Part shown: piece after piece, positions 1,557 to 57,330 of the stretch
Numbering within the stretch: the first letter of the stretch is position 1
Layout of the letters: each line of letters opens with the position of its first letter
Assembly (NCBI GenBank): GCA_047495785.1
Contig: JBLDXI010000010.1
Location: 1,612,001-1,676,000 of the forward strand
DNA length: 64,000 bases
From: Lepidodermella squamata
Taxonomy: Eukaryota > Animalia > Gastrotricha
Direction of reading: 5' to 3'
The notes under the pieces: generated by a model
The model's input: the letters and a program-made list of their open reading frames with translations, nothing else
What the model was told of the DNA's origin: nothing
The model's database searches: none
Made by a program: the position numbers and the translations under genes

Positions 1557-2651
1557 ATGCTCGGAAGGGATCTGATGTCTATCTTACTGGTTGTTAGTTC
1601 AGGACCCAGTGTTTCAGCAAGCTATGCATTTTGCCAGAACTTGGCCTCGAACTGTGAATACTTGACGTCCAAATTTGCAAAACCAAGCCCTGATCCAGTG
1701 AACTTAACACTATCTCTTCAGCCATACGCCTTCCTGGGCATCGACGATATAGCTCAGACATTCTCTCTTCAAGCAACGATGGTATTCGAATGGCCGCTAC
1801 CAGACTGCGCAAAGTGGCAAGCAAACAAAAGTGAGAATCTGCCATCAGAATGTTGGTACTCAAAAGACTCGATATGGAAGCCAACTATCAATATCTGGAA
1901 TCAAGTTGGCAGTTCCTCGCAATTTTTCTCTGACTCGGGCAGTGAGGTTGTAGTTACTAGCGATGGACAAGCTCATTGGTCTGCGAAAGGCGCCATTGAA
2001 ACTTCTTGCACCTTGGATCACGCCAAATTCCCATTCGACACTCAATCATGCAACATACAAATATCTGGTTATCAAGGTTTCAATGTAGAAAAACCGTTCA
2101 TTTTCACTGATGGGACAAAGATTCCATTCATTGTCGGCTTCGCGAATGATGCAGACATTTGGGAGCTGAAAAGCTATGAAACTGCGGTCAATAACGGAAT
2201 GAACAGCGCTCTTTTCTCGTTCACGGTCAAGCGCAAGTCCAACTATTACTTCGGCCTGTTTTTCGTTCCAACTTACCTTTTGGCCGTTATGATGTTAGGG
2301 ACGCTAGCTTTACCAGCGGAAATGGCGGATCGCTCGTCTTTTTCCGTCACTGTTTTTCTAGGTTTCATCTTTTTCCAGGGTGTTTTCTACTCGTCGATAC
2401 CGAAAACTTCGACGAGGCTTTACATGGAGGTCTATCTCAGCTGCTATTATGGAGCGTCAGTTATCATAGCGCTCTGGTGCTTAATCTCTTGCCGTCTGGT
2501 AACAGAGACCGCTTACTTTGCTAGGAAAGTCAAACTATGCAGGATGTCTGCCGTCAAAGTTATCGATATCGTGGATTTTGCGATATTTGTGCTCGTCTTG
2601 TTGTTCATCGCCGGGGTCAATGTTGTTTACTTCGCATCTATTGTGACTTAA
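1557..2651 (+). CDS. Divergent Cys-loop ligand-gated ion channel subunit, intronless (outlier 1)
   Basis: Signal peptide, IWKP motif, Cys-loop CTLDHAKFPFDTQSC, pre-M1 KRK, four TM helices, M2-M3 PKTS, short M3-M4 loop. Confidence 0.93.
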   Translation: MLGRDLMSILLVVSSGPSVSASYAFCQNLASNCEYLTSKFAKPSPDPVNLTLSLQPYAFLGIDDIAQTFSLQATMVFEWPLPDCAKWQANKSENLPSECWYSKDSIWKPTINIWNQVGSSSQFFSDSGSEVVVTSDGQAHWSAKGAIETSCTLDHAKFPFDTQSCNIQISGYQGFNVEKPFIFTDGTKIPFIVGFANDADIWELKSYETAVNNGMNSALFSFTVKRKSNYYFGLFFVPTYLLAVMMLGTLALPAEMADRSSFSVTVFLGFIFFQGVFYSSIPKTSTRLYMEVYLSCYYGASVIIALWCLISCRLVTETAYFARKVKLCRMSAVKVIDIVDFAIFVLVLLFIAGVNVVYFASIVT

Positions 2652-3295
2652 GTGCACAGTAAGTGTTCAGAGTGCTCCCCAATTTTCTTAATGTGCTTAC
2701 GGGCAAAAACATATGAATACGCCTGTTGGGGACGTCACAATCTTCACTTTTCCGTCCGATTTCGTAGTTCAAGCAGCCTGATTTCATTATAATAATTTCA
2801 GAAAATAAAATACGGCAATATTAGCAGTCAAAATAAAAGTTCAATTATTTTACAGCCCATAAAGAAGTAGAATAGAAAAAGTTGACTTTCTATCGAAGAG
2901 ACTTTTATTATCATGACTTGGTAAGCAAAACTACCGATAGGACTTTTTGACGACACTTCGGATACTTCCCGTCTATACGAAAAATTAGGTATTAGGGAAT
3001 TGGGCCATTAATTAGGAATTAAGAAGCATGATTATATAGATTTCACAACAAAAACTGATTCGAGGCATAGAGCATAGAGAAGTCCAAGAACCTTTACTTT
3101 GCAAGCTCCACAAATCTGTGCGATGGGCTGGGAAGTTCTAAGTTTCAGTTTAGAATACCCATTCCACTCTATTCTCTACGATTTTAGAGGACACAAGCGT
3201 TGATGTGCTGCAAAGAAACATTTTATTTTCACTTTCGTAGTTTAGAAAGAAGAATCTAAATAAGATTTGGTCACAAAAATCGTCGTTTCCATAAA

Positions 3296-4141
3296 TTACG
3301 CTGCGCAGAATTCCATCCCTGGCGTGTTGAAGCTGGAAGTTGTTACAGTTTGCGTTGATGAAACTTGCAACTGTTTTCCGGCAATCCCAATGCAGCAGGC
3401 TGTGTAGGACGAATACTGTGCGAACTCAAAGCTAAGCATTTTCGTGTAATTTTTCTATGCGGAAGGTAACTTACGCTATTTGGGGAAGCGGATATGGATG
3501 CAGCGTTGTTGAAACAGGTTTCTGGGAAACGAGGGCAGTACTTTTGAGTAGCAGTGGAACCACTGTAACCATCGTTATTTGCAGCGACCAGACACGACCG
3601 AAATAGAGTTCCACTTGGGAAACAAACTGCAGCTGGTCGACCACCAGAAAGGATGGTATCATAAACGGGTGTTCCCGTGAAAGACGCACAGCAAGTCGAG
3701 AAATCAATGTACGTAGCAATAGCCTATTTTATAATATCTTGAAAGAAGAACTAGTTGGATTATTGCAATATTGACGTACAGAAGACCCAAATGGGCAGTT
3801 GGTAGACCCTGTGAAGCCTGGTACGATGCAGAACTTGAGGTTTGTCGTGGCCGGAGACAAATTTGTCGAGGAAATCTGGCACTGTGTCACTTGAGTCTGA
3901 AAAAATCAGGAAATGTATGAATTATCGCAAGATAGACTTTTCTCACCGCACAACCAGATCCTGTCGGGCAAGGATTAGCTGTATTCTGGCAACTATTGCC
4001 TGTAGTACAAGCTGGAGAGCTAGACAAGCAGCTTTGCCCCGAAGGGCAGGAGACAGTTGGAGTTGTAGTTGATACCGTGCATGCTGCCCCGAAATCGAAA
4101 TGGGAAAAAGCAGCGAGCAACAAGGCAATGTAAGACTTCAT
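3296..4141 (-). CDS. Secreted Cys/Ser/Thr-rich protein of unknown family, 4 exons
   Basis: Signal peptide MKSYIALLLAAF. Three ~50 bp GT-AG introns join into one frame ending ...PGMEFCAA* at 3296. Contains two CC-bearing internal units. Confidence 0.7.
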
Positions 4142-8381: not shown

Positions 8382-9736
8382 TTATTCTTGAAAATCCATA
8401 ACACGAGAAAGAATGTTTTCGATGTTACCGCTGGTAACAATGATAGCCATTATGTAAGCGTCGAGACCACTGAGTAACGAGACGACAGTGCAAACGACGA
8501 AGCAATCGAGAATACGCACGTTTGTCATGGTGATGCTACAGACCAAATTCCATTTTCTACCGCCCCATTTTGATAACGCCAACAAGCTGGCAATGAAGCA
8601 ATAAACTGTCAGAAAAACACAAGCGGCGAGTTGAATTTGAATCAGGGCTAACATGTAGACGACTTGGTTTGTTCTCGGCAACTCTGGTAGGATTAGATTA
8701 AATTCAAAAGTGAACGTAAGGACTAAAATAAGGCTGAGGATTATCCTTTCCTTATTTTTCGGGCTGATCAGGAAAACTGAAACGTGCAAAATCAACAGAA
8801 CATAAATTGGAGACATCGAATAGGCGAGAAAGTAAAAAGGATTCCTCTTAAACGCCATGTTAAGTTGAATGCGGTCGTAGTTGTTGATTTTGCTGCGGTT
8901 GTAAGTGAATTCGTCCTTAAGGCATTCCCAATCATCTCCATCAGAGATGATCGACTCGAATTTAACATTAAACTTGACATTACTGATAATTGCGTAAATG
9001 TCCCAATCTTTTGTTGATAGCTGAATGCTGCAGTTGAGACGATCGAAAGGAAAGTGGGCGAGATTGAATCCATTTTCGCATTTCGTATCGATCACCCTTG
9101 ATCCTCGAATGTAGCCATAAACTGGCTCAGCATCTGCTCGGAAAGTCACATCGGTTGAATCTCGTTTGATTGGCAATAAGTTCATTTCATTGACTGAATT
9201 GAGGTGTTCAATAATTGGAATCCACGTCTTCTGCGAGTCTCGAGTTACCCATATTGCATAGCCTTTCCCACCTGCAGGGCCTAAGAACTCATCCCGATCC
9301 ATTGGCTTACATTTCGAGGCAGGTAATCGCCAGTAGACGAAAATCACAGCTAGTACTGAGACACTTCAAATAGAGAAATTTAAAGAAAAATCTTTAACGT
9401 TTCAGTTGCGAACCTTCTTTCGTCGTCGTTAATTCTGACTATGCGCTGTAGGTTGACTGTAATATCAATAATGATTGGCAGGTCATCGTGGCTTCGCTGA
9501 TTGATCAAATAATTGTCGATATTTCGCTCCTTAGCGATGGGGCAAGCAACATTGAAAAAGTACGCCGTAAAATCGATGATAGTTGCGTTGTTGAATACTT
9601 TTTTAAGCGGAGTTGTAACGGTGGGAGGTGGGGCAGGCTCAGTCAGAGGAAAATCAACTTCGAAGTCTTCCGCACTCACACGCAGCAAGGTGAAAAGCAG
9701 TAAAGAGAATATAGAAGAGAACATGTCTGAGGACAT
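8382..9736 (-). CDS. Divergent Cys-loop channel subunit, 2 exons (outlier related to subfamily B)
   Basis: Intron 9413-9364 (GT..AG) joins DDER-S-VSVLAVIFVYW. Cys-loop CENGFNLAHFPFDRLNC, four TMs, PRTN. Start could be 9736 or 9724. Confidence 0.88.
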
Positions 9737-16741: not shown

Positions 16742-18052
16742 TCATGACGTCAATATTGAAAATGTTGCGCTATATGTGGCTAAACTAGCCGTTAAAAATA
16801 TGCTAAATACGCCAAAGTCAAGTAAATCGACGCGATTGAAATAGCTGTTAACCGATGCTAACCAATAAGTCGAATGGCTAATACAGAGACGAGAAACGAA
16901 TAGGGCGTATAATGCTATCGAGACTCCAATAATTGTTTGAGCTGCGACGCATTTCATCAAATACAGTGATTCAGCGGTTCTTGGAATCGCCTGAGCAAGC
17001 AAGGTAAACACAACTGACGTAGCTAGAAATAGAGTAATAGATAAGTTAGCTCTTTGCGCATATTTGCCTGGCATAATCAATGTTCCTAGCTGAAGAATGG
17101 TCAAAGCAGCTAGAGGTAGGAAAATAGTTGAAAAATAGGCTTGAGGTTTGCGTTTGAATTCGAAGATGAATTCAATGTTATCAGCCAAGCCAGTGCCATT
17201 ATTTTTTGCGCCGTGTGAATCGTGATTTTCTAATATCCAAATGCTCGATTCGTCCATGATGTTTTCGACGTTGAATGCATTTATGCTGAATTCAGCAAAA
17301 CCTACTAGGATTTTATCTATATCCCTACTTATTGCGATCGACAGTTTGCATCTTTGTCTATCGAACGGAAACCTGTGAAAAAAATTGCATGTTTTCGGAG
17401 TGATGCCGCTTAGCTGCCTCTCTGACCTTTTGAATGAAAAAGAGCAAATAGAATTGAACCTGCCTTGGATCGACCATGACATTGTTCCATCACCCAACAA
17501 GTACATCTCACCGGTTCTGGGCAATTATATAGTTGAAGGACGATTCACAATAAAGTCTTACCTTTCAAAGGGATTCAAGATATTCCCAGCTGAATTTGCA
17601 TGCTTCAAAGGAGGTAGCCATATTTCATCGTTCTTCAACATGCACATCGGCCATGCAAACTCGTCAGACTGGTTCCATTGCGCACATGGCGGCATACTCC
17701 AACCTATCAAGACCTCCGCCTCAATCGAGAACCTGTATTGAGATGTTAGAAGCCATAAAAATAGGTATCGTATCACGTATCACGTTTGGTAGTAATCGTC
17801 CAATTTGACATCTCCAATAGGTTCCAACTCGAGGGTAAGACCGATAGGCTTATTGCCCACGTTCGGTCGTGTTGTTTTACTCCTGAGATACGGGCATCTT
17901 GCGACCAAGTAGGAACAAAATGAAAACCACCCAAAATTATCATAGGGATCAATATCGGCCGCATCCATAAGGCTATCGTCACATTTTACATTCCACAGTG
18001 ATCGACAGAAAAGCACAGCAGAAAAGAAGCAAATAAATCTGCCATATTGCAT
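16742..18052 (-). CDS. Cys-loop channel subunit A1, 4 exons
   Basis: Exons 18052-17784, 17732-17562, 17516-17427, 17372-16742. Cys-loop CSFSFKRFPFDRQRC, four TMs. Confidence 0.92.
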
Positions 18053-18814: not shown

Positions 18815-20143
18815 TCAAGAGGTTAACACTGAGAGTGTTGAGCTGTATGTTACTAAGCTTGCAGTCAGTAAAATTGAGAACAAACCAAAGTCGAGTAAAT
18901 CTATCCGATTGAAGAAGCCATTTACCTGGGCTAGCCAATAATGAGGGTAGCCTATGGCGAGGCGGCAGACTACGAGAATGTAAATTGTCAAGATTACTCC
19001 TATAATCGTCTGAGCAGCAACGCACTTCATCAAATGTAACGAGTCAGCGGTTTTCGGGATTTCCTGAGCAAGCAAGGTCAACACGACTGATGAGGCGAGA
19101 AACAGCGTGGTAGATAAGTTAGCTCTTTGCGCGTATTTGCCTGGCATTATCAAAGTTCCGAGTTGCAGAATGGTCAATGTAACAAGAGGTAGGAAAATTG
19201 TCGTGTAATACGCCTGAGGCTTGCGTTTGAATTCAAAGATGAAATCAACCGTGTCATAAAGGCCAGTGTGATTGTTTATTGAGCCGGATGAATCGTAGCT
19301 TTCTAATACCCAGACATCCGATTCGTCCATGAGGCCTTCGATGGCGAAGTGAAAGTCCACACCAGCGAATCCAACCATCACTTTGTCAATCTCTCGGCTT
19401 ATCGCGATCGAGATTTTGCATCGCTGTTTGTCAAAAGGAAACCTATGTAAAAGTTTCTTTTCAGCTCATCTACCATTAATATATAAATCAAAATAACAGT
19501 ACCTCTTGAAAGATAAATTGCAGATTGAATTGAACTTTCCGCCAGTGGACCATATTAGCTTTCCATCATCAGTAAGGAATAAATCATCTTTCCTGAAAGA
19601 AATTCGGTAATCTTCATCAGGTTGGCAAGAGATTCTGCGACTTCTCACCCTTCGACAGGATTATTGATGTTACCAGCCGAGTTGGCATGTTTCAATGCCG
19701 GTAACCATACTTGTTCGTTTTTCAACACGCAGATGGAATATTTTGACTCAACAGATGTGATCCAATTAGCGCAAGGCGGCATTTCCCAAATAACAATAAC
19801 CTCAGCCTCGATAGAAAATCTGTGGAAATCATGAAGGGGGCAGCGTTCGAAATAAAAAGTGATTAAAACATTACGTTTGGTAGTAATCATCGAGTCTGAC
19901 GTCTCCGATAGGATTAAAACTAATCAAGAGATTGGTAAATGCTTCGCCATCAATTGCTGGTCGTGTAGTTTTACTCCTGAGATACGGACACTTCGCGACT
20001 AAATCGGAACAAAATGAGTACCATCCATATTCATCGTAAGGGTCTAGTTCGAATGAATCGGCCGGCGAGTTGGCCGAAATTGTGGGTCGACACTGGAATA
20101 AAAGAATGGCATAAATGAAGTGGCTAGAAAGGCCGAGACTCAT
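18815..20143 (-). CDS. Cys-loop channel subunit A2, 4 exons
   Basis: Same intron positions as A1. CNLSFKRFPFDKQRC, M2 AQRANLSTTLFL. Confidence 0.92.
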
Positions 20144-24675: not shown

Positions 24676-24882
24676 TATGAGTATTTTCTTTTTCGATTTT
24701 GAATGTCTTTTTCTGTTCTATTCGCAAATCCTCATCGTATGGAGTGAAATGGGATTACCTTATGTTAGCATAACAAGGTTTGGCGGAAAATCGAAAATTC
24801 CTCTTCTTATTCTTATTCCTACGAGCAACACCACAGATTCTAGACGCCAATCCCAGAATTGCACAGAGGTTCTAGCTACGGG

Positions 24883-25101: not shown

Positions 25102-25112
25102 GCTACGGGTTC

Positions 25113-39144: not shown

Positions 39145-40579
39145 TCATCTCCTATTTTGCATAACATCCATGTAATAAGCATCGATAATGACGATGATAA
39201 TGAAGAAGACCGAAAAAGCGCATACATCAACGAGTCTAACATTTGAAATTTCTAATGACTTGTAAATCTGACGCGTTTTTTCTCCCCATTTCGTTCCAGC
39301 AATCACAGTTGCAATCAGCACGTAAATTGTTATGCCAACACAAATCGCAAGTTGCGCCTCGATCAGCACTATCAAATAGATCCGCTTCGAAGTTCGCGGG
39401 ATTAAGCTGAATACGAGGCTGAGTAATACAGAGAACGCCAGATCGACAGTTACGCAGTAAGTTGGCCGATCTGGATGTTCTGGGTTCATGATGAAAGCGC
39501 AAAGTTGAAGGGCTATCATGATATACATGGGTAGAAACACGTTTCCGATGAAGTAGAAATGCTTCCGATCAAAGGCCATCTTAAGACTTATCCTATGGTA
39601 GACTTCCTGATCTTCCCTCTTCTGCGTCTTCTCGGAGTAGTAGAAAGCTTCAGGCACCGGGCTCCAAATATCAGCGTCATCGAGTAGCAGGGACATATTG
39701 TCGACCTCGTATTTAACTTTAGAAGAGAATCTAACCGCCCAAGTTGGCCAGCTGGGCTCGATATCAATACTGCACTCCATCCTATCGTAAGGGAAATGCT
39801 CAACGGCGAAACCATCGCAGTTAGTATCGATCAGGCGCGTTTCGTAACAGCTGCCATAGACGGGTTTCTCAGAGGCTCCTAGATAGACGATCGTTTCCTG
39901 GAAGAGGTTGATTTTGGAGGCTGCGTTAACATGGCGAATAACAGGTCGCCATGAGGTCGATGTATTGCTGACAAGCACTACCGCAAGAGGAGCCTCGTCT
40001 TCACCGTAGTACTCTCTGAAGTTCATAGTTTGGCATCCAGGCCCCGAGTAATCGTCTTCAAATTTAGGAAAAGGCCATGTAACTTCGATCTGAGCGAAAA
40101 CCGACAGGCTACAGTATTCACAAACAGGTGAGCAAAAATTGTTTTCAAATGTAAATATACCTTTGCCCTTTATCGTTAATCTCAGCGACTCGATACATGA
40201 TAAGAGTGAATTCGAGATCGATAGGAAAAGGATATGGATAAGGTGCTGGTCGAAGACTCATGAGCTCAATAATCAAATCTGTACTTCTAGCCAATGAGCA
40301 GAAATCGTAAAGGAAGTCTCGATTGACCATCTCAGCAAAGTCGGTAACATCTAACCAGCTTGATTTCGTTTGATTAGAGGAGAGCTCAGTTGGATTTTCC
40401 TCCGTCGAACTGAGAGTTTCATTTGAGGCCGGTTCGAGCTGAGTGGAATTGTCATCCAACGAGTTGTCAGTAATTTCAGTTTCATTGGAAGGAAATTCAG
40501 GCAGGGTAGAATTATCATCCAGCGAACTGGCTATACCGAGTACGGAGGCGATTAAAATAAAGCTATGCAAAGTATTCAT
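39145..40579 (-). CDS. Cys-loop channel subunit B1, 2 exons
   Basis: Intron 40160-40109. CDGFAVEHFPYDRMEC, M2 PDRPTYCVTVDL. Confidence 0.92.
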
Positions 40580-40756: not shown

Positions 40757-42097
40757 TTATTCATAATATTCAGTCATTTTGACCATGTAATAAGCATCAA
40801 CTACAACGATAACAGTCACAAAAATAGCTGTTGCTATAAAGTCGACAATTCGAACGTTTTGAACCTTCACCAATCCGAAAAGCCGGCGCTTTGTCTGGCC
40901 CCATTCTGTTTCCCAGATAACCCCAGCCACCAGCGCGTAAATTGTGATGAGGACGCAAATTATCACCTGAGCTTCAACCAACACAACGATGTAAATAGTT
41001 TTTGACGTTCGCGGGATCAGTCCGAAGACTAAGCTTAACAAAACAGCGAATGATAGATCGACAGTGATGCAGTACAAAGGCCGGTCAGCGTATTCAGGGC
41101 TCATGATCAAAGCAGATAGTTGCAAGATGATCATTATAATCATCGGGACGAAGATGTTTCCGATAAAGTAGAAATAACGGCGTTTGAACTGCATTTTACA
41201 GCTGAATCGCGTGAATTTTTCCTTATTTTTGGTTATGAAATTAATTTCGCCATAAAATGACTCGTTAACCGCTTCCCAGACGTCTGAATCTCCCAAAAGT
41301 TGGCTGAAATCTTCAACTTCGCAGATTGAAGTGTTCGTTAACGATACCATGTTGCCTTGGTATGACGGCTCAATGTCTATGGAACAAGACATGGTGTCAA
41401 ACGGGAAGAAGGTTACATCAAATCCGTCGCAGTTCGTCTCGATAAGCCGGGCTTGTTCGACCAACCCTGTGACTGGTGTGATATGAGCTCCGATAGTAAT
41501 TTCATCAGCTTTGATAAGGTCGAATTCCCGAACAGCATTCACGTGGTACATCCTAGGCTGCCATGATACAGTGCCGTTTGCAACCAGGAAAACCTGTTGG
41601 TTTTCATCGTCGAAAAATTCAGTGCTATTCAGACTGCCGCATCCATGTATCGGATAACTCCAGTAGACCACAATATTTGTGTAAACAGAAAGACTCTGCG
41701 AAATGTCGTTGATTTCTGTGATACTGTTTAGCTTCAAATCGATTGTTGCATTGATGGGGAAATCGATGATTCGCCTTTTGAGTATCAGCTCGAGTACAAG
41801 CTCTCGCGAAGCAACAAGAGGGCACCTGTCCTCAGAATACCACTTGTAAAGCCTTTCCGAATACGTCAAGTGAGTATCGCTTTCTCCGGAAAAAGCTTGA
41901 TCATAATCTGATTGGTCGGTCCCAAGTTCCGTCAAGGTTAAATTTACATCGGCTTCAGTCCAGCTTGCCCTCGTATCAGCTTTTGTCCCGGTAGCATTTG
42001 CATCAGATTCCGTCGAGATTGCATTCGTTCCAGCATCACCTGTAGCATTGGCTGAGATTAAAAAAGGTATGAAAAGTAGTAAAACTGTGCTATTCAT
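40757..42097 (-). CDS. Cys-loop channel subunit B2, intronless
   Basis: 446-aa ORF with signal peptide, CDGFDVTFFPFDTMSC and four TMs. Confidence 0.94.
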   Translation of the reverse strand: MNSTVLLLFIPFLISANATGDAGTNAISTESDANATGTKADTRASWTEADVNLTLTELGTDQSDYDQAFSGESDTHLTYSERLYKWYSEDRCPLVASRELVLELILKRRIIDFPINATIDLKLNSITEINDISQSLSVYTNIVVYWSYPIHGCGSLNSTEFFDDENQQVFLVANGTVSWQPRMYHVNAVREFDLIKADEITIGAHITPVTGLVEQARLIETNCDGFDVTFFPFDTMSCSIDIEPSYQGNMVSLTNTSICEVEDFSQLLGDSDVWEAVNESFYGEINFITKNKEKFTRFSCKMQFKRRYFYFIGNIFVPMIIMIILQLSALIMSPEYADRPLYCITVDLSFAVLLSLVFGLIPRTSKTIYIVVLVEAQVIICVLITIYALVAGVIWETEWGQTKRRLFGLVKVQNVRIVDFIATAIFVTVIVVVDAYYMVKMTEYYE

Positions 42098-47035: not shown

Positions 47036-48304
47036 TCATAGCTCACTCCTTTCGGTCATTTTAACCATATAAATTGTGTCAACAATAATGACAACTATAA
47101 CAAAAATGGTTCCCGCGATCCAGTCGATAATTCTAACATTGGATACCTTCAAGCACTTGTAAATCCGATGCTTCGCCTGGCCCCACTCCGTATCCCAGAT
47201 GACTCCGCTGATGAGCACATAGATCGTGATGATGACGCAAATTATCACTTGAGCTTCGACCAACACGACAATGTAAACTATTTTCGAAGTTCGAGGAATT
47301 AGTCCGAAAACCATGGATAACAGAACAGCAAATGCTAAATCAACTGTGATGCAGTACAAAGGCCGATCAGGGTGTTCAGGGGTCATTATCAAGGCGGCTA
47401 GTTGTAGGACGATCATCAAAATCATTGGGACGAAGATGTTCCCGATAAAGTAGAAATAACGTCGTTTGAACCCCATTTTACAGCTGAATCGGTTGTAATT
47501 TTCCATATCTCTGGTAACATTTGTCACTTCGCCAATAAAAGAGCCATTAATAGCTTCCCAAACATCAGAATCTCCAAGAAGCTGATCGAAGTCATTCGGA
47601 TCGCAAGAAATGTCCTGAATCTTGATTAATTGACTAGGGTACGAAGGCTCGACATCTATCGAACAATCCATGACGTCGAATGGGAAGAACTGAACATTGA
47701 AACCGTCGCAGTTTGTTTCTATAACTCGCGTCTCGGTTGAGTAGGCAAACACTGGGTCTGAATAAGCTGCAATGGAGATCTCAGTGTCAGTAACAAGGTC
47801 AACATCACTGACGGCATTGACATGGAATAGACGAGGTTGCCAAGATCGGGTGGCATTGCCTTTTAGCCAGATCGAAGCATCTGAATCGTTGTACAATTTT
47901 GTTACATTAACGAAAGAACATCCATTCGCCGGGAAAGTCCACGCAGTCTTGATTGTGGAAAATACGGACAAAGTCTGTTGTAGATCACTGATTTCAAGTA
48001 TGTTGAACAGAGTGAGGTACAAGTCGACTGCGATGGGCAGATCGGTGTTTTGCCGCCGTTTGAGAATCATCTCTAGGACAAGTTCTCTCGAAGCAGCAAG
48101 TGGGCATTTCTTATCGACAAACCAGTCCCGCAATAGCTCGGCATTTGTCTTCCGATCTGGGTTAGTCCCATTGAAGATTTCGTTGTATTCCGAGTTATCT
48201 TCCACCTCAATCTCAGACGACAGCGTTGAAGTAGTGATATTTGAAGCTGAACAGCATCCACTCGCTACAACAAGCAATAGAAGCAACGTAGAAATAAGAG
48301 CCAT
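47036..48304 (-). CDS. Cys-loop channel subunit B3, intronless
   Basis: Signal peptide MALISTLLLLLVV at 48304. CDGFNVQFFPFDVMDC. Closest to B2. Confidence 0.93.
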   Translation of the reverse strand: MALISTLLLLLVVASGCCSASNITTSTLSSEIEVEDNSEYNEIFNGTNPDRKTNAELLRDWFVDKKCPLAASRELVLEMILKRRQNTDLPIAVDLYLTLFNILEISDLQQTLSVFSTIKTAWTFPANGCSFVNVTKLYNDSDASIWLKGNATRSWQPRLFHVNAVSDVDLVTDTEISIAAYSDPVFAYSTETRVIETNCDGFNVQFFPFDVMDCSIDVEPSYPSQLIKIQDISCDPNDFDQLLGDSDVWEAINGSFIGEVTNVTRDMENYNRFSCKMGFKRRYFYFIGNIFVPMILMIVLQLAALIMTPEHPDRPLYCITVDLAFAVLLSMVFGLIPRTSKIVYIVVLVEAQVIICVIITIYVLISGVIWDTEWGQAKHRIYKCLKVSNVRIIDWIAGTIFVIVVIIVDTIYMVKMTERSEL

Positions 48305-48426: not shown

Positions 48427-49748
48427 TCACTTTCCATACATTTTAGCTGAAAAGTACACATCTACAATTATAACAATGATGAAAAAGATGGCAAATGCTA
48501 TAATGTCTAGTATCCTCACATACCGCAACTCGAGTGATTTGTAGACCTGATGCGTTTTTTGAGACCACTTGGATTCTGTCAGAGTCCCAGCAAACAATGT
48601 ATACAAAGTTATAGCGACGCAAATGATGAGTTGAGCTTCAATCAGCGAAACTACATAGACTTGTTTAGAACTTCTTGGCAGATAGGTGAAAACTAAGATC
48701 AAGTTTACAGAGAAAGCCAGGTCGAGAATAACGCAGAAGGTGGGGCGGTGGGGATGCTCTGGGTTCATAATCAAAGAACTGAGCTGTAGGACTATCATTA
48801 AATAGGTTGGTAGAAAAATGTTGCCGATGTAATAGAAATATCGTCGTTGGAATCCCATTTTGAACGTCAAATGGCTATTTGTCATTCTATAAGCCGCTGT
48901 CACTCGAACTACAGTACTGACATTTGCCGTGAACTGGTCTGGCACCGGCTCCCAGACATCTGAATCGCCGAGAAGATTTGCGAAATCCGCAACTCCATAT
49001 TTGATTTCATCGGAAAATATGACAGATCCCTCGCCCCAACTGCCCTCCTCAAGTTCGATTGTGCATTCCATTGCATCGAACGGGAAGTACTCGATGTGAA
49101 AACCATCGCAATTTGTTTTGATCAGCCGTGTTTCTTCAATTTGGCCGCGGATATGCGTCGGATCATCAATGTGATAGGTGAGTTTCTTTGTTGGGATGAA
49201 TTCTAATTTATCAACAGCGTTTCGATGGTCGATTTTCGGTTTCCAGCTCATCGATGTATTCCCATTAAGAGCGAGTGAAGCATTCGGTGAATCTCGAAAA
49301 AGAACCAATTTGAATGCGCTGCCACAGTCGAAATTAGGATAAGTCCAAGTTGCGGAGGCTTTGGCGAAAACTGTTAATCTAATGTATTTCATGTTTACTA
49401 TGGATTTGAGGTAATTCAGGGCACAAACGTTTGTCCGATGTCGTCGATTTCAGCCACACTGAGAAGCATCAGCTGAACAGAAACTTCAATCGGCAAGACG
49501 TCACTTCGGTTTCGCAGCTGTAGCTCTAGAATGAGTTCGTCACTAGACGCTAGTGGGCAGTCAGTATTGAAGAAAAAGTCGTCGAAGAGTGGCATGAATT
49601 TCGGGGATGCCATTAAGGCTTTGATATACTCCGGCGGAAGAATGAAGCGAGAAGGAAGATCATCGGCTTGTTCTTCAGGAGAAACAGTCGAATTTATTGC
49701 GCTGATACTGATTAGAACAACCGAGAAGAAAACTAACAGAACATTCAT
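48427..49748 (-). CDS. Cys-loop channel subunit B4, 2 exons
   Basis: Intron 49428-49379. CDGFHIEYFPFDAMEC, M2 PHRPTFCVILDL. Confidence 0.92.
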
Positions 49749-50310
49749 TGTTGAATAAGCAAAAAACGCGTTCTTTTATTATTGAATTACACCGGCTCAC
49801 GGTTGATCATCTTCATAATATAAATGCTGTCAACTATTACTATTACAATGCTGAACACGAGAGCAGCAAAAAAGTCTACAATCCTTATGTGAGAAAGGTG
49901 AAAGTCGCCACATATTCTCTGTTCTTTTTTGCCCCATTTGGTAACAGCTAGTACACCTGCGATCAAAGTATAGACTGTTATAGCAGCACATATTGCAAGT
50001 TGAGCCTCGATAATAATGATGATGTAAACAACTCGAGATGTCCTCGGAATAAGGCTGAAAACTAGCGCCAGCAGGACGGAAAATGACAAGACAACCGTAA
50101 TGCAATATGAAGGTCTATCGGGCAAGGCAGGATCCATCGAAATCGCGCAAACCTGAGTGATGATCATCATAATCATTGGAATATAGATGTTTCCGATGAA
50201 GTAGTAAAATTTGCGTTGGAAAGCCATTTTATATGAAATTCGGCTATAGTTGCTCTCGCTCTTTGTCACGTTCTGTAGCACGTAGTCAAATTTCGGCAAC
50301 GGTTCCCAAA

Positions 50311-50792
50311 CATACGGGCGCCGTCGTTCACAATTTCAAAAAACTGAGACATTTTCAACACAATGATTGCCCCCTTGAAAATTGCGATTTTGCAATAAAT
50401 AACACAACCCAGTAGGTAATCGATGACGCTCTGCACACTGGTTACCGTTTTATCTCTCAATTAGCTAACCGTAACTGGCAATTAGCAAAAAATAAAATTT
50501 TTTGAATCGAAGTGTTTTTCAACTCATTTCTAGGGTTAAAAAAATCGCCGATTCCGAAAATCACATTTTCAACTAAAAATTCGGCAATTTGAATTTTTTA
50601 TGTCATTTAGGCCCAGTTTTCGACCAGTTAGACTTGAAATAAAAATCTGGAAAATTCACCAAAATGTGCGGCTCAAAAAGTTACTAATTAGACCTGTTTT
50701 CAGCGTTCTAGAATGATTTGTAAGGGTGGTGACCATTGTCTCAAATGACAAAAATGTTGTAAAAATAATTTGTGAACGACGGCGCCCGTATG
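50311..50792. mobile_element. Non-autonomous TIR element (482 bp) with 2-bp TSD, possibly CMC/CACTA-like
   Basis: Perfect 23-bp TIR CATACGGGCGCCGTCGTTCACAA. Comparison with the B6 empty site (CCCAAATGTC) shows AA duplicated. Confidence 0.9.
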
Positions 50793-51442
50793 AATGTCTG
50801 ATTCGTCAAGCAGATCAGCGTAATTTTCGACCAAGTAGATCGCACCTTCGAATTGTAGCGTGAAGGTCGGCTCGCTAGGTTCGATATCAATCGAACAATG
50901 CATTCGATCAAACGGGAAATGCTCGACGTTGAAGCCTTCGCAACGCGTTGTTATTAGTCGAGTTTCGTATAAGGATCCAGCCACTGGATTAGTCGAAGCC
51001 TCAAACCACAGTTCAGTCTCTCGAATGAAATTATTGTCTTCTGCAGCATTTATATGGAGAAGTTTCGGCTTCCACGATCGAGTGGTGTTGCCTCGAAGGT
51101 ACACGAGCTCGTCGCTGAGGCTTAAATTAACGTTTAACTGATCGGTCAGGATTGGGGTGCAATCGTAAGGTGGAATCTCCCATTTGGTTGATGCGTAGGC
51201 AAAGACAGTGATTCTGCAAGACAACATGTTTCTATAAAAAACTATAGAGACACTGCACAGTTTTCGCCTATTTAAGAAAGCTGAAATGTATTCCGTGCTG
51301 ACTGGAAGCTAGAGTCGCAATGCCTAAAGCTCGCCCTAACCCTAACACTTACTCTAACTACCGACCTACTCCTTAATAACCTTAACCCAAACTATCACTC
51401 TAATCACAACAGAGGTGCTGGGTGTCGCGACCTCCAAGATAC

Positions 51443-51589
51443 CAGTGTGCGAAGTAGGATCCGGGAGCTGAGGGGTTGTCTACTTATTTTCTAGGAAACC
51501 AAAGGATGTGGTTTTTTCAGTATTCCTCTGGTTGGAGTCCTAGAGCTGGAGTGTCGCGACACCCCAGCACCCCTGTACCCAGCACCATG
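51443..51589. mobile_element. hAT MITE, same family as 24883-25101, in intron 1 of B5
   Basis: Starts CAGTGTGCGAAGTAGGATCC, 8-bp TSD CAAGATAC, shared core GTGTCGCGACACCCCAGC. Confidence 0.82.
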
Positions 51590-52984
51590 CAAGATACCAA
51601 CCCCAACCCTAGAAAACGAACCCCAAAAGGATGAAAAAACCACACAGAGATCCTTAGAATTCACTAGAAAACACCTCAGATTCGGAATTCTACAACGCCG
51701 TAGCCCCAGCCCTTACCTTAAACACTACCACTCTCAAAGGAAACATTATTCTCTAAGAACATCCAGAAGCCAAAAGCATGCTGCGTTTATCTATTATTAT
51801 AAGTCATAATATTGTATGGCTCTTATTTGCTTACTTACGTCTCATCCAAGTCGCTGATTTCCACAACGCGATACAAAGTTAGCCCGACGTAAATTTTGAT
51901 GGGTAAAGTTGCCGCTGGATCTCTTGACAGGAGAATTTCTGTCGGCAATTGGCGCGACCGGGCCAATGGGCATGCCTTGTAGTAGAAATAATCGTAAATT
52001 TTACGATTGTAACTGGTTCCAATGCTGTCTTTATCGCCGAAAATATCATTAGATATGGAATTATCGGAAATCGAATGTGTAGAGTAGTTAATATTCTTTG
52101 TGCTGTGTGATACTTCGTCAGAACTCTGCGCTAAAGATCGACCTACGATGTGAAATATTGCGAGGCTCAGTGGCAACTGCCACATTTTATTATCAAATGT
52201 ATCAACTCTACAACTGTGGCGTACCTTTTCGTGGCGAATTGAAGTGTTGCAAGTTGTTAAGTACATATCACGAAGTTCATTCATACAAACGTATCACGTA
52301 TAGTAAATATTTCTCTCACATGCGAAATGCGAAAGCCGTTTGCAAACACTTAACACTTTACAAATTATCCTGATAAGAGGGCCTTTTAAAGGGAAATTTG
52401 CGAGAAATCAGCACGTTAGGCCAATGGGCAATGGCGAATATAGTGACTCAAGTCGAGTAAAGTCGCGGCGAAGACGCTGGATGCGATGAATCGATCCCTT
52501 CTGTTTCCTACTGCCAGCAGCTTCTCAATCTCCTGTTTTATAGCCTTAAGTAAGCCGGTGGTTGGTTTTATCACATAAGTCGAAGTTAGATATTAATCAC
52601 GATGCCCTCGCTCTTTGAAAAGCTTCTTGGAGTAGTCTGTAGGCTTGCTACTCGTTGAGAACATCGAACTGGGACGCCTCAACTTTTGGCTTGCCCCGAC
52701 TTCCTGCCGAGATAAGACGAATTATTGCCCGAAAATGACCGGAAATTAAAGCTGGATAACGTGGTCTTTGGTTTTTAGGCTTCGCCCTTGGGGTTCTCCG
52801 TACTTCTTGGGCCAACAGAAGACTGTTAGATCTGGAACTTAGACTGTGTTAGATCTTAGATCAGCGTTGGCTAAGTAGCAGGATTTTCCGACCCCATCAA
52901 CGCTAAGTAAATGGCTCAATAATTGCCATTGCTATAATCGGACTCGAGTGGGTTGGAATTCCAAAAATGTTGACCCCAAGTTAG

Positions 52985-53352: not shown

Positions 53353-54900
53353 TCACACCGACTCACGGTTGATCATCTTCATAATATAAATGCTGTCAAC
53401 TATTATTATTACAATGCTGAACACGAGAGCAGCAAAAAAGTCTACAATCCTTATGTGAGAAAGGTGAAAGTTGCCACATATTCTCTGTTCTTTTTTGCCC
53501 CATTTGGTAACAGCGAGAACACCTGCGATCAAAGTATAGACTGTAATAGCAGCACAAATTGCAAGTTGAGCTTCAATGAGAATGATGATGTAGACAACTC
53601 GAGATGTCCTCGGAATAAGGCTGAAAACTAGCGCCAGCAGGACGGAAAATGACAAGACAACCGTAATGCAATATGAAGGTCTATCGGGCAAGGCAGGATC
53701 CATCGAAATCGCGCAAACCTGAGTGATAATCATCATAATCATTGGGATGTACAGGTTTCCGATGAAGTAATAAAATTTGCGTTGGAAAGCCATTTTATAT
53801 GAAATTCGGCTCAAGCTGGGTTGTATTTCTGTATTGTTGTGTATCACGTAATCGAAAGTCGGCACCGGTTCCCAAATGTCAGATTCGTCGAGCAGGTCAG
53901 CGTAATTGTCGACCAAATACGTCGCTCCAACGAAATTCATGATCGCGCTCTGTTCGCTTAGCTCGATATCAATTGAACAGTTCATTCGATCAAACGGGAA
54001 ATGCTCAACGTTGAAGCCTTCGCAGCGCGTGGTTATTAGCCGAGTTTCGTAGCAAGTAGCTGTGACTGGTTCATCTGAAGCCTGGAACCACAATTCTGTC
54101 TCTCGGATCAAAATATTGTCTTTAGCGGCATTGGCGTGTAGAACTTTCGGCTTCCACGACCGAGTTGTGTTGCCTCGAAAGAACAGTGTATCGCTACTAC
54201 CGCCTAAATCGATACCTAGCTGATCGGGCATGATTGGCGTGCAGCTGTAAGAGGGAATTTCCCAATTGATTGATGCAGTGGCGAAGACAGTAAGCCTGCA
54301 AACAAAGGTTTCCGATAGAATCTTGATCTTGTGAGTTTTAATGTGAGTTTTAATGAAATTAACATCAACCCCATCGCTAAATCAAGATTTAATACCCATC
54401 CCTACCTAATCCCTACTCTAAAAACGCACCCCCTAAAGTAATCCGCATCTTTTAATAATATAGCATCTATAGGGGAAGAGTGGCACATAAAATGTGTAGA
54501 ATTAATTTGTATGTATCCGCCATTCTTTTACTTACGTCTCATCCAAGTCGCTGATTTCAACAACGCGATATAGCGTGAGCCCCGCAGTAATCCTGATGGG
54601 CAAAGTTGCACCTGGGTCCCTCGAAAGATAGATTTCCGTCGGCAACTGACGTGACCGGGCCAACGGGCATGATGTGTAGTAGAAATAATCGTAAATTTTA
54701 CGATTGTAGCTTGCGCCTATGCTGTCTTTATCGCCGAAAAAATCATCAGGTGTGAGATTGTCAGGAATTGTATCCGAAGTGTATTCGGTACTGTTGGAAG
54801 AATTGGATATTTCATCAGAACCAAGCGCTAAAGAATTCCGAAACGTAATGCTTAATATTGCGATACTGAGTAACAGCTTACACATCTTTTTTGCTAGCAT
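53353..54900 (-). CDS. Cys-loop channel subunit B6, 2 exons
   Basis: Intron 54535-54296. CEGFNVEHFPFDRMNC. Start at 54900 or 54885. Confidence 0.92.
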
Positions 54901-55062: not shown

Positions 55063-55499
55063 CCGTAGTTACCGAAATATAAGCCCCCACTCGTTTAGAA
55101 GCCTGTCTCGATTAGAAGCCTAGGTAAATTGAAGTTCGACGATGCATAGTCCTATCTCGAATAGTAGCCTAGGCTACTACGGCGCGTGTGCTCTGCTGCG
55201 CTCAACGGTATTTAAAAACGAAAAATTCGTGAAGATGTGTAATAATCTGCGATTTACGATGATTTTAGTTAAAGCGCATTCCTTATTAGTCTTGATTTCC
55301 AGCTATTAGACGACCTAGCTAATAACTAATAATGAATACTTTTATGAGTTTTGAGATTGAAAGACGGAAAGTAACGTCAGGTCTCCGTTTCATAAGCCTA
55401 TTTCAAATAGAAGCCTAGTCTTGAATAGAAGCCTACTTTTCCCCATTTTTCGAGGTATCATTTTTGTATAAGCCCGGGTTAGTATTTCGGTAACTACGG
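55063..55499. mobile_element. Tc1/mariner-type MITE with CCGTA termini
   Basis: TA|CCGTAGTTACCGAAATA ... TATTTCGGTAACTACGG|TA, subterminal TAGAAGCCT repeats. Confidence 0.8.
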
Positions 55500-55989
55500 T
55501 ATATGCTATATGCAAATGAGTTATGAAGAGGTATCCCTTACCCCTTAATTTCTAATCGTCATGGAAACATTCAGTTTCATAGACGAATATGCAGTCATTA
55601 AACAGAAAATTGGGAAAAGTAATAGCGTGGAACTTTAAAAATAGAGTTCTCTTCACTAGGAATGCAGACCTTTGATACCTACTCACCATCCTCCAATCAT
55701 TTTAACCTCTATTTTTTGAGGATTGTCTACTGGCTGAGAGGTCAGATTGATGACAAAAGGAAGACGAACACTGATTGGATGGTTAATTATTGACGATATA
55801 TATCCAATTATATCACCGTCACCTCGTTTTGTTTTTCCAGCGGAACTATGACAGTATCGATATTGAACGGACGATATCACAGCAATAGAATAGGCGTTAA
55901 TATTGATGACTTCAAAGTGATATAAGAACCTGGCGAAGCATAGCAACGGCCGACATATCCGAAAATTCGCTCTCATTAAACCCATAACA

Positions 55990-57330
55990 ATGGTTTCATC
56001 CTACTTTATAGCGTTTGCGATCTTCTTCTCCTTGACTGCCGCAGATTATGCGGTTGATGATGACGTCCGACAAATCGTTTTCCAAGAATGCAACCTTCTA
56101 CCCCCGGTAACATGTCCTAATGACGAAGGCTAGTGGGAAACTTGAAGCTCAGGAAATGAATTTTGCTAATCCAACTCAATTCCAGATCTTCAAAGGAACG
56201 ACCCAACCCCGGTCACAGCATCATTCGTCTTTGATCGACTCGTAGAGTTCAACGATTTAGGTGGCTTCCTCACAATAACAGGCGGTTTCTACCTAACTTT
56301 CTACGTCGATTGCGTCGCCCAAGCTGCTTACAAGTACAACGCTACAAGGAAAGTTCCGCGCTACTGGGCTATCACGAATCCTAACGACTACTGGAAACCT
56401 CCAATCGCTCATCTGAACAGTCGGTTCGATTACGGCTTGACGCAGAATGTCGCCCAGACCATCCTAGTTTATCCTTTCTTGGGCCAAGTGGTCTACGTTA
56501 CCAGGGGATCCTTTACTCCCTACTGCAGCTTTAACTTCAACAGGTAGTTTCTGAGGTTAAAAAGTAACTTTTTTCATGATTAGTTTGAAAGGTTCCCTTT
56601 TGATGAGCAATACTGTGACATGAACATGGGCCTTTGGCTTCCGAGAGATTTTGTCAGTGTGAAATCAGCCAGCCATAGTTTCGACAACGGGGAGGACGAT
56701 TTCTTGCCAGATAACGTCGGTTGGCTTCTGAAAGACATGGAAACCCAAGTTGCGATTAAGAATTTCTCCCCTGAGAATTATTTCGTCATCGCGGCGAATC
56801 TCCACCTGCAACGGAGGCCTCAATTCTTCATCACCAGCATCATCCTACCCTGCGTGATCTTGTCCATTGCACAATTGTCGACTTTTCTCATCCCGACGGA
56901 GGCTCATGAAAGAGCTGAGTAAGATTTGAAGTTTCTTTGGATCATTTTGATTCATCTTTCTTAACAGGTTCGCCATAACTCTTTTGCTATCACTTCAAGT
57001 TATGCAGAGCAACGTCGAAAGTAACATGTGAGTTGGCTAAATTTAAAACCTGTCCTCATTTTTCCAACTCCTTTCAGGCCTAAAACTCCGGTGAATGTCT
57101 ATCTCGAGAACATCGTCCTAGTTGAGTCATTCTCAGCTCTCTTCGTGGTCTGCTACGCCTGCATCATGTGCGCGTGGTGCGATTCATGGAAAGAATCTGC
57201 CGAGAAATTGCATGAAATCAAAGGATACAAAATGCGCCGATGCCGTTTCATCGATCTAGCTGTTGGTCTTGGCTTGCTTTTCTATTCAGTCGTATCGTAT
57301 GCAGCTCTGTTTATCCTCATGCTGCATTAA
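55990..57330 (+). CDS. Divergent Cys-loop channel subunit, 5 exons (outlier C)
   Basis: Exons 55990-56128, 56186-56543, 56592-56918, 56968-57027, 57078-57330. YWKPPIAHLN, CSFNFNRFPFDEQYC, M2 HERAEFAITLLL, MPKTP. Confidence 0.85.

Follow-up and report, generated by a model that had tools for sequence, protein, structure and literature searches.

A tandem array of Cys-loop receptor genes without an intracellular domain

Gene content and growth of the array

The window, which is the whole 64-kb stretch of DNA analyzed here, carries 17 tandem pLGIC loci between positions 1557 and 57330, a range of about 56 kb (Table 1). A tblastn search with three full-length ORFs as queries recovers 15 intact genes, one gene that is split by a MITE, and one fragment that spans only M2 and M3. 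The first-pass annotation had given the same count (15 intact, one disrupted by a transposable element, and one fragment), and it proves to be exact by both tblastn and a scan with a family HMM. A six-frame scan with this HMM finds no family fragments in the full 64 kb beyond the 17 loci. The arrangement is mostly head to tail with 15 of the 17 loci on the minus strand, also as first described. All 15 intact gene models have GT-AG introns, between zero and four per gene, and their products are 364-460 amino acids long. The usual intron size is 45-60 nucleotides, and four introns are longer (70-240 nucleotides). For G17, the first donor (GTCCTA) is weak, which leaves its 5' exon provisional. 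The host genome of the array is compact and belongs to an invertebrate.

Table 1. Positions and structures of the receptor loci and of the inserted element in the window
Feature	Position	Strand	Description	Basis
G01 pLGIC	1557..2651	+	single exon, 364 aa, Cys-loop C-x13-C	ORF
G02 pLGIC	8382..9736	-	2 exons, 434 aa, divergent subfamily B member, Cys-loop C-x15-C	
G03 pLGIC	16742..18052	-	4 exons, 386 aa, subfamily A; in-frame intron within Cys-loop	
G04 pLGIC	18815..20143	-	4 exons, 385 aa, subfamily A	
G05 pLGIC	20625..22046	-	4 exons, 392 aa, subfamily A (A' type of two-gene cassette)	
G06 pLGIC	22362..23706	-	3 exons, 413 aa, subfamily A	
G07 fragment, M2-M3 only	about 25053..25412	-	G05/G09 type	
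G08 pLGIC	25672..27011	-	3 exons, 411 aa; 85% identity to G06	
G09 pLGIC	28662..29978	-	4 exons, 382 aa; 72% identity to G05	
G10 pLGIC	30935..32261	-	3 exons, 404 aa; about 80% identity to G06 and G08	
G11 pLGIC	39145..40579	-	2 exons, 460 aa, subfamily B, Cys-loop C-x14-C	
G12 pLGIC	40757..42097	-	single exon, 446 aa, subfamily B	ORF, Pfam
G13 pLGIC	47036..48304	-	single exon, subfamily B; 422 aa from Met before signal peptide	
G14 pLGIC	48427..49748	-	2 exons, 423 aa, subfamily B	
G15 disrupted pLGIC	49787..52284	-	subfamily B; MITE within large exon	
MITE-like insertion in G15	50311..50792	.	482 bp, 26-nt terminal inverted repeats	
G16 pLGIC	53353..54900	-	2 exons, 435 aa, subfamily B	
G17 pLGIC	55990..57330	+	5 exons, 373 aa, own subfamily; M2 on a 60-nt micro-exon	

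Subfamilies A and B grew within the array through local tandem duplication, with a two-gene cassette present in three copies (G05-G06, G07-G08, and G09-G10). Outside its MITE, the disrupted gene G15 stays collinear with the HMM of the family. A second repeat has lengthened the intron of G15, and a repeat found in this intron also adjoins the G07 fragment. Matching cassette genes are 72-85% identical, the dS of the transmembrane domain is below that of the extracellular domain for both G08/G10 and G05/G09, and the DNA of G15 and G16 is 92% identical in the 3' half but 73-76% identical in the 5' half. Taken together, these values point to the cassette structure and to probable gene conversion in the transmembrane half of the genes. 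The sequences support a mode of expansion by local tandem and segmental duplication, with one copy killed by a transposable element and another truncated.

Predicted fold, pore, and ligand site

The array genes were compared with two sets of outside proteins: about 59 representatives of 50%-identity clusters that belong to the same short clade, and 51 long-loop relatives, which are nAChR-like genes of bivalves, annelids, and hemichordates. Superfamily matches are to Pfam Neur_chan_LBD (PF02931; E = 6e-18 for G01) and Neur_chan_memb (PF02932). Matches in the PDB reach E-values of 1e-14 for a single gene (1.2e-14 between G01 and the alpha7 nAChR) and 1e-49 for a profile of the clade, which is far above chance. 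An AlphaFold (AF2) model of G01 (pLDDT 89.7, pTM 0.83) has only nAChR, 5-HT3, or PBO-5 structures among its top Foldseek matches in PDB and Swiss-Prot, with E-values of 1e-23 to nAChR and 5-HT3. Each protein is predicted to combine a signal peptide with a beta-sandwich extracellular domain, which holds the Cys-loop, and helices M1-M4 with a short turn between M3 and M4. Hydropathy profiles have four hydrophobic segments in most members; in a few, M2 and M3 are merged or one segment falls below the threshold.

The large M3-M4 intracellular domain of the nAChR type is absent from all 15 window proteins. The distance from the middle of M3 to a conserved Asp at the start of M4 is 20-23 residues in every one of them, and its median is 23 in the 59 outside members of the short clade and 75 in the 51 long-loop relatives. 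By hydropathy, 10-18 residues separate M3 from M4, so the loop of about 15-30 residues that had been claimed is indeed short and the earlier estimate was, if anything, generous. In the AF2 model of G01, M3 (289-324) is joined to M4 (329-363) by a turn of four residues.

Both Cys-loop cysteines occur in 15/15 window proteins and in 58-59 of the 59 outside short-clade members. The classical spacing, C-x13-C, is seen in G01, subfamily A, and G17; G11-G14 and G16 have C-x14-C, and G02 is a length variant with C-x15-C. The FPFD motif and the pre-M1 Arg are kept in all intact genes. Across the 15 window and 59 outside proteins of the short clade, this Arg, the M1 Pro, the M2 9' Leu and 6' Thr, and the M2-M3 Pro are near-invariant (two window proteins have Ile at 6'). 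At -1', 12/15 proteins have Asp or Glu, G03 and G04 have Gln, and G14 has His. Because this gating machinery is intact, the window proteins most likely assemble into pentameric ligand-gated channels, and the acidic -1' residue of the 12 suggests that these channels are probably cation selective. The departures at -1' in G03, G04, and G14 may mean that selectivity differs among members.

The first-pass annotation described orphan-looking Cys-loop receptors that lack the vicinal CC of loop C, the SWTY of loop B, and the YN of loop A. A motif search of the members agrees, as it finds no loop-C CC, no SW[ST][YF], and no W-x-P-x4-YN in any of them. Acetylcholine-gated nAChR subunits have an aromatic box made up of loop-A Tyr, loop-B Trp, loop-C Tyr, and loop-D Trp, and no intact window gene has the loop-A Tyr or the loop-B Trp. 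The loop-B Trp column holds S, K, or G in the window genes versus W in 35 of the 51 long-loop relatives, and when G01 is aligned to alpha7 only a loop-C Tyr and a loop-A Trp remain. The orphan-looking character holds up: the aromatic box is degenerate, and there is essentially no intracellular domain left. Since the aromatic box for acetylcholine is gone, the ligand is probably not acetylcholine.

A different loop-A motif, W-x-P-x3-H-x-N, is carried by 14/15 window proteins. It recurs in 34/59 of the short-clade members from outside the window, whereas none of the 51 long-loop relatives has it. Protons or metal ions gate several pLGICs, such as ZAC, PBO-5/6, insect pHCl, and GLIC. The array channels could likewise be gated by protons or metal ions instead of an organic ligand, with the loop-A His as part of the sensor. 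The distribution of this His, the appearance of proton-gated PBO-5 among the top fold matches, and the loss of the organic-cation cage are in keeping with such gating. However, a single conserved residue is weak evidence, and the His is missing from G01; we consider this form of gating quite unlikely.

A wider clade of short receptors

In an unrooted tree from a quick search, in which many internal nodes are unresolved, the short clade and the long-loop group are split with 100% SH-aLRT support. At the sequence level, the short clade is marked by the lack of an intracellular domain, an extra Cys pair, in many cases the loop-A His, and R at 0' with D/E at -1', although the clade was defined on the data set that also gave these marks. 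The extra Cys pair (C33 and C84 in G01) is present in 15/15 window proteins, in 49-54 of the 59 outside short-clade members, and in 0-2 of the 51 long-loop relatives. All of the outside members that were traced come from metagenome or read assemblies, and the eight ENA-derived members whose contigs were fetched (8/8) trace to four linked assemblies. Judged from these sequences, a second organism also has a strongly enlarged set of short-clade genes. An origin of the metagenome proteins from the same species as the window is excluded by their 25-38% identity to window proteins. We found no paper in the literature on the short clade, which is an older group of receptors that has apparently gone undescribed.

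The window genes fall into three well-supported subclades of this tree, each of which also holds proteins of other organisms. By this grouping, the array mixes at least three old subfamilies: A with G01, B, and G17. The presence of 17 loci within 56 kb, mostly on one strand and head to tail, might instead suggest a single lineage-specific radiation from one founder gene in this genome. Such an origin is extremely unlikely. Identity between the window subfamilies is only 18-30%, and every subfamily is closer to proteins of other organisms; G17, for instance, is 38% identical to its nearest relatives P0132 and P0077 versus at most 23% to any window paralog. Constraining the window genes to a single clade costs 284 units of log likelihood and is rejected by the AU test (p-AU = 1e-4). 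An independent birth-and-death radiation had been proposed for the array. Birth and death is borne out by the local duplicates and the two dead copies, whereas independence fails on the mixed subclades and the AU test. The array, with its 15 intact and two dead genes, probably encodes Cys-loop channels without an intracellular domain that are drawn from at least three old subfamilies of a wider clade.

The genes appear to belong to the cationic branch (nAChR/5-HT3/ZAC type), given the PDB profile ranking, the fold matches, and the acidic -1' residue in 12/15; their position among curated reference families was judged by how profile and fold matches rank rather than from a rooted reference tree. 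The best 60 PDB matches of the short-clade profile are all nAChR, Alpo4, or 5-HT3A (E = 1e-49 to 9e-41) and include no ELIC or GLIC. The nearest named sequences are genes of bivalves, annelids, hemichordates, acoels, and flatworms. GLIC and ELIC resemble the window proteins in their M3-M4 link of a few residues, missing intracellular domain, and subunits of about 320-370 amino acids, but unlike the window genes they have no Cys-loop disulfide and no gene structure with signal peptide and introns. ELIC matches subfamily B weakly.

Prokaryotic channels have a short M3-M4 link, so the loop-less form could stem from horizontal transfer of a pLGIC out of a prokaryote or protist instead of from secondary loss of the intracellular domain by an animal receptor. 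G12 alone does match an ELIC-GLIC chimera (5e-9) about as well as nAChR, and it comes from the very divergent subfamily B. Horizontal acquisition is nevertheless very unlikely: all members have both Cys-loop cysteines, the gene structures include signal peptides and conserved spliceosomal introns, the best 60 profile matches are all animal cationic receptors, and the nearest sequence neighbors are animal nAChR-like genes.

Loop-less animal pLGICs do exist in databases, since short pLGIC clusters of nematodes (about 389 amino acids) and arthropods (about 368 amino acids) in the ESM Atlas match the window genes in length, Neur_chan_LBD domain, and fold over the whole length (TM 0.76/0.72 over residues 16-361 for the nematode cluster). 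These clusters were compared by fold, length, and domain, and are a lead only. To our knowledge, none of them has been functionally characterized.

Lophotrochozoans have expanded sets of orphan nAChR-like genes (Jiao et al. 2019, PMC6896357), and Alpo4 of Alvinella pompejana is a solved orphan receptor (PMC10338036; PDB 8BX5) that ranks among the best PDB matches (6e-14 to G01 and 9e-45 to the clade profile). The window genes resemble these receptors as orphan-ligand Cys-loop members of the cationic branch in intron-poor tandem arrays, and many of the lophotrochozoan genes likewise lack the loop-C CC and the residues that bind acetylcholine. In contrast, an intracellular domain persists in those relatives, with a median of 75 residues across the 51 long-loop rows and residues 308-412 in Alpo4. 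The relatives also have a G-E-K/R pore mouth and, in most cases, the loop-B Trp. The window genes lack all three features and carry the extra Cys pair.

Metazoan Pro-loop receptors are defined by missing Cys-loop cysteines, and an extrasynaptic action has been proposed for them (Jaiteh et al. 2016, PMC4795631). Like the window genes, they are non-canonical, uncharacterized invertebrate pLGICs with a patchy taxonomic distribution. Membership in the Cys-less Pro-loop or prokaryotic type is rejected for the window proteins by the presence of both cysteines in 15/15.

Selection, possible sensory roles, and transcription

The intact genes are under purifying selection. Values of dN/dS are 0.14-0.32 for the extracellular domain and 0.06-0.17 for the transmembrane domain at dS of 0.3-1.7, and the rate of evolution is thus 2-3 times higher in the extracellular domain than in the pore domain. 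The highest local values (0.5-0.8) lie around the loop F/loop C region. No segment of coding sequence within the extracellular or transmembrane domains has dN/dS >1; a single value of 1.12 falls in a poorly aligned stretch right after the signal peptide in the G05/G09 comparison.

The cephalopod chemotactile receptors CRT1 and CRB1 have a demonstrated sensory role. They share with the window genes an nAChR-like character, tandem expansion, and loss of acetylcholine binding, the last of these predicted for the window genes from their motifs. The best 60 PDB matches contain no entry for a chemotactile receptor, whether the query is G01, G12, or the clade profile, and with no sign of special kinship there the comparison should be read as an analogy.

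By this analogy, the array could encode environmental chemosensory receptors that act in sensory or epidermal cells and are gated by external chemicals. The loss of the neurotransmitter aromatic box, tandem expansion with birth and death, the strong growth of the clade in another organism (about 59 representatives of outside clusters), the faster extracellular domain, and its dN/dS peak near loops F and C would all fit this role. The extracellular domain usually evolves faster than the pore in ordinary neurotransmitter receptors too, however, and no segment of either domain exceeds a dN/dS of 1. Orphan nAChR-like receptors that sense chemicals are indeed known from cephalopods (discussed in PMC10338036), but the expanded orphan nAChR-like genes of bivalves have been tied to expression in stress and immunity rather than to a demonstrated chemosensory role (PMC6896357). 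With no chemotactile receptor among the best 60 matches in addition, we regard a chemosensory array as possible but unlikely.

A broader proposal, to which we likewise assign only a minor chance, is that the short clade is an unrecognized family of animal receptors, namely cation-type Cys-loop channels that naturally lack the intracellular domain and have an extra N-terminal disulfide and a loop-A His, and that these channels sense external chemicals, protons, or metals ionotropically. If this were true, then insect IRs and cephalopod chemotactile receptors would be joined by a third, independent family of ionotropic chemoreceptors, one that has undergone massive expansion in some invertebrates with compact genomes (17 window loci; about 59 outside representatives).

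Transcription was assessed from one low-depth cDNA run (X2) whose tissue is unstated. Its contigs that are 99% identical to the window span G04-G06. The joint 19591>19648 in G04 coincides with predicted intron 2, the joint 21255>21310 in G05 coincides with predicted intron 3, and the 3' exon of G06 is also covered. G03 has no cDNA cover in this run, and cover of other genes is at low depth. Together with the two dead loci among 17, this sparse cover might suggest that the array consists of nonfunctional copies, either decaying or untranslated. We give that idea almost no credence in view of the 15 complete reading frames with every gating residue, the dN/dS of 0.06-0.32, and the spliced transcripts. 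A SMART oligo was found as a loose end of the cDNA contigs.

Channel loci and protein architecture

A tblastn search with three full-length open reading frames (ORFs) identifies 17 pentameric ligand-gated ion channel (pLGIC) loci, numbered G01-G17 in window order, and a family HMM run against all six-frame ORFs finds no further pLGIC locus in the whole 64 kb. The window consists of eukaryotic DNA; its G+C content is 39-46% and long ORFs are numerous. Gene models were assembled from ORF pieces spliced together at GT-AG sites so as to keep the frame and maximise similarity to a single-exon paralog. They yield 15 complete genes encoding proteins of 364-460 aa; G01, G12 and G13 have a single exon, and the remainder carry one to four introns that are 45-60 nt long except for four of 70-240 nt. 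The 15 intact, one transposon-disrupted and one fragmentary loci counted in the first-pass annotation are exactly right. The disrupted gene is G15: a 482-bp element, which carries 26-nt terminal inverted repeats, breaks it in two, and the rest of the gene is collinear with the family HMM. The fragment, G07, spans M2-M3 and adjoins a repeat that is also present in an enlarged G15 intron (about 80-150 nt, 85-87% identical), and one element family may be common to the damage at both loci. The 54-nt Cys-loop intron of G03 is in frame and contains no stop, so its retention would add 18 residues to the Cys-loop.

All 15 predicted proteins have a hydrophobic N-terminus, a W-x-P motif, a Cys-loop with [FY]P[FY]D, a pre-M1 Arg, an M1 Pro and an M2-M3 Pro. 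The Cys-loop spacing is C-x13-C in G01, subfamily A (G03-G06, G08-G10) and G17, C-x14-C in G11-G14 and G16, and C-x15-C in G02. Within M2, R at 0' and L at 9' are invariant and T at 6' occurs in 13 of 15 proteins. At -1', 12 of the 15 have Asp or Glu, G03 and G04 have Gln, and G14 has His; the anion motif P-A-R is absent among the 15. An acidic -1' position without P-A-R makes cation selectivity the likelier prediction for most members. The M3-M4 gap measures 10-18 residues by hydropathy, and 20-23 residues separate a mid-M3 column from the conserved Asp at the start of M4 in every protein. An AlphaFold2 model of G01 built from a 53-sequence alignment has the pLGIC fold (mean pLDDT 89.7, pTM 0.83), and in it a 4-residue turn links M3 (289-324) to M4 (329-363). 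The short M3-M4 loop first read from the DNA therefore holds, as does the reported loss of nAChR motifs: the vicinal CC of loop C, SW[ST][YF] of loop B and YN of loop A occur in 0 of 15 window proteins. When G01 is aligned to human alpha7 with HMMER, only the loop-C Tyr and the loop-A Trp are retained.

Relatives and placement among known receptors

Word-indexed protein searches are nearly blind to this family. G12 has no match, G01 has one (Lottia), and a 53-sequence profile has four; JGI metagenome contigs scanned with G13 also give no match. The sole productive route is an exhaustive HMM search covering 1.84 billion cluster representatives, which returns 12,361 matches with E-values of 1e-3 or less, 99 of them at 1e-30 or less, with a maximum identity of 38% between any outside protein and a window protein. 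These matches are of two kinds. The first consists of long or fused animal gene models from bivalves (Mactra, Tegillarca, Argopecten, Pinctada), the annelid Owenia, the hemichordate Glandiceps, the acoel Convolutriloba and the flatworm Macrostomum; the intracellular loop has a median of 75 residues in the 51 long-loop units of the tree. The second consists of short-loop proteins of 360-420 aa, and every one of the 20 that were checked is from an ENA or Logan assembly. Three outside proteins (P0073, P0094, P0134) have N-terminal extensions with no Pfam domain.

All eight ENA-derived short proteins whose contigs were fetched trace to four assemblies, two of which are named after BioSample SAMN13674978; nearly identical contigs link the other two to them. 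One additional short protein is from run SRR23086389. The ENA contigs have 36-40% G+C and look like a compact animal genome. Their neighbouring genes (Sushi, astacin, BBS7, SLC4, galaxin repeat, anti-LPS factor, with 7tm_1 and kinase also present) point to an animal source and do not tell its phylum. Contigs L003 and L005, named after SAMN13674978, carry neighbouring pLGIC genes, and L010 carries a gene with an anti-LPS factor/scygonadin domain. Many of the outside representatives of the short clade, and possibly most, come from the SAMN13674978 animal and are less than 50% identical to one another; this suggests a very large expansion in that animal. Short pLGIC clusters from nematodes and arthropods in the ESM Atlas show that loop-less animal pLGICs are present in databases, and their link to the short clade is only a candidate one.

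A profile of 53 sequences from the short clade, meaning the window genes and their relatives without an M3-M4 loop, matches nAChR alpha6 (1e-49), alpha7 (5e-49), Alpo4 (9e-45) and 5-HT3A (1e-41) in the PDB, and no anionic receptor, ELIC/GLIC or chemotactile receptor is among its best 60 PDB matches. In Foldseek, the top matches of the G01 model in both PDB and Swiss-Prot are only nAChR, 5-HT3 and PBO-5. These profile and fold rankings are the basis for a probable placement of the clade in the cationic branch. G12 alone scores about as well against an ELIC-GLIC chimera as against nAChR. The Cys-loop cysteines, signal peptides, shared introns and clade-profile ranking lead us to reject prokaryotic transfer and to read the chimera score as divergence.

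The unrooted tree (IQ-TREE, LG+C20 PMSF, SH-aLRT) covers 125 rows, namely the window proteins and their short-loop and long-loop relatives. One side of a split with 100% support has 50 rows, of which 49 are long-loop and one is short; the other side is a 75-row clade. All 15 window proteins lie in this clade, together with 58 metagenome proteins of the short-loop kind and two rows that had been classed as long or truncated. Window genes fall into three of its subclades (starred in the tree), each with outside sequences. Subfamily B (G02, G11-G14, G16) groups with P0003 and then P0005, P0007, P0008, P0020 and P0022; subfamily A plus G01 groups with P0019, P0036, P0070, P0079 and P0044; and G17 groups with P0132, P0077, P0024, P0031, P0017 and P0056. 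Forcing the window genes into a single clade lowers the log-likelihood by 284 units (p-AU 1e-4; 51 rows, LG+G4). Given the mixed subclades and the AU result, the array is not one private radiation, and we reject both descent from one founder and the independent radiation proposed in the first-pass annotation. The array is instead at least three old subfamilies that are co-located, of which A and B later expanded locally. The window genes belong to a subgroup with clear limits and a distinctive structure, marked by a missing intracellular domain, an extra Cys pair and a conserved pore.

Signature positions in the short clade and in the long-loop, nAChR-like group
Position	Window	Outside short clade	Long-loop group
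Extra Cys pair (G01 C33 and C84)	15/15	49-54/59	0-2/51
Loop-A His	14/15	34/59	0/51
Pore mouth (-2' to 0')	D/E-R 12/15	D/E-R	mostly G-E-K/R
Loop-B Trp	0/15	11/59	35/51

Growth, expression and likely function of the array

Subfamily A contains two alternating gene types. G05 and G09 are 72% identical, G06, G08 and G10 are 79-85% identical, and the types alternate along the DNA with G07 (of the G05/G09 type) in the middle pair. This arrangement fits a two-gene cassette that would have been copied three times, one copy being truncated afterwards. The dS values are lower in the transmembrane than in the extracellular half (0.31 vs 0.71 for G08/G10; 0.39 vs 0.67 for G05/G09), and G15 and G16 are 92% identical at the DNA level in their 3' halves vs 73-76% in their 5' halves. 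Stronger purifying selection by itself does not reduce dS, so it cannot alone explain the lower values, and gene conversion of the pore-encoding half is the simplest reading.

The array genes are expressed, at least G04-G06, and are under constraint. Contigs from the 2015 run X2, which a SMART template-switch oligo at one loose end identifies as a cDNA library, are 99% identical to the window. Their coverage extends to G04, G05 and the G06 3' exon, with G03 and most spacers uncovered, and two of their joints (ends CT..AC) coincide with predicted minus-strand introns. Pairwise comparisons give dN/dS of 0.14-0.32 for the extracellular domain and 0.06-0.17 for the transmembrane domain (dS 0.3-1.7). 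In sliding windows, dN is close to zero across the Cys-loop, M1 and M2, and the highest within-domain dN/dS (0.5-0.8) lies near loops F and C. Values above 1 are confined to a single poorly aligned stretch directly after the signal peptide, and neither analysis detects positive selection. An array of pseudogenes is rejected by the spliced transcripts, low dN/dS and intact gating and pore motifs.

We infer that the products are pentameric ligand-gated channels, probably cation-selective, and that their ligand is something other than acetylcholine. Environmental chemosensing, as first proposed, is possible but speculative, and so, to the same degree, is proton or metal sensing, an idea that comes from the loop-A His. 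The original observation of the array is confirmed, and its interpretation is supported in part. Environmental ligands, if true, would make this a new ionotropic chemoreceptor family; otherwise it is one more orphan channel lineage, of moderate interest. The short clade is a test case for how and when animals lost or gained the intracellular domain. This domain is usually engineered away from Cys-loop channels for expression and structure work, and its natural absence makes these minimal channels, several of which are single-exon genes, attractive for such studies. Large orphan expansions of invertebrate nAChR-like genes are known and are functionally opaque. The closest literature concerns the lophotrochozoan nAChR expansion (PMC6896357), the orphan Alpo4 (PMC10338036) and a Cys-less metazoan clade (PMC4795631); no paper on a Cys-loop-bearing animal clade without an intracellular domain was found in the literature searched.

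Other features of the window

Coordinates of features in the window and on ENA contigs
Feature	Position	Strand	Detail
17 pLGIC loci	1557-57330		
EB-module protein	5176-5721	-	
EB-module protein	6745-7254	-	
STELLO-type glycosyltransferase	10242-11141	-	E 3e-33
Arrestin-like exon	12671-13066	+	
G03 Cys-loop intron	17373-17426		
G03-G04 spacer repeat	18300-18900		
X2 joint in G04	19591>19648	-	56 nt
X2 joint in G05	21255>21310	-	54 nt
Repeat beside G07	24882-25102		
SOCS-box ORF	34174-35634	+	single exon, 486 aa, E 4e-9
CBM1 ORF	35917-36576	+	219 aa, Pfam E about 1e-8
Protein kinase exon	36966-37481	-	
CBM1 ORF	38179-38832	+	217 aa, Pfam E about 1e-8
Element splitting G15	50311-50792		
Repeat in G15 intron	51443-51590		
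SOCS-box ORF	57712-59220	+	single exon, 502 aa, E 4.5e-5
Long ORF	60135-62069	+	644 aa, adjacent to 364-aa ORF
Long ORF	62088-63182	+	364 aa, adjacent to 644-aa ORF
Neighbouring pLGIC genes	L003 7771-11335		
Neighbouring pLGIC genes	L005 4103-11191		
Anti-LPS factor/scygonadin gene	L010 6072-6626		

Between the channel loci lie unrelated genes, of the EB-module, STELLO-like, arrestin-like, SOCS-box, CBM1 and kinase types. Both SOCS-box ORFs carry the box at the C-terminal end and flank portions of the channel array, and their N-terminal parts have no Pfam match. The two long ORFs beyond the array, for which Pfam gives nothing over threshold, may belong to a mobile element or represent a gene specific to this lineage. 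The CBM1 ORFs are paralogs with a fungal-type cellulose-binding module close to the N-terminus, which is unusual for an animal genome. In the G03-G04 spacer, DNA-run contigs reach a depth of 340-740, up from about 55-80, and loose ends and internal joints are numerous; this pattern indicates a high-copy repeat.
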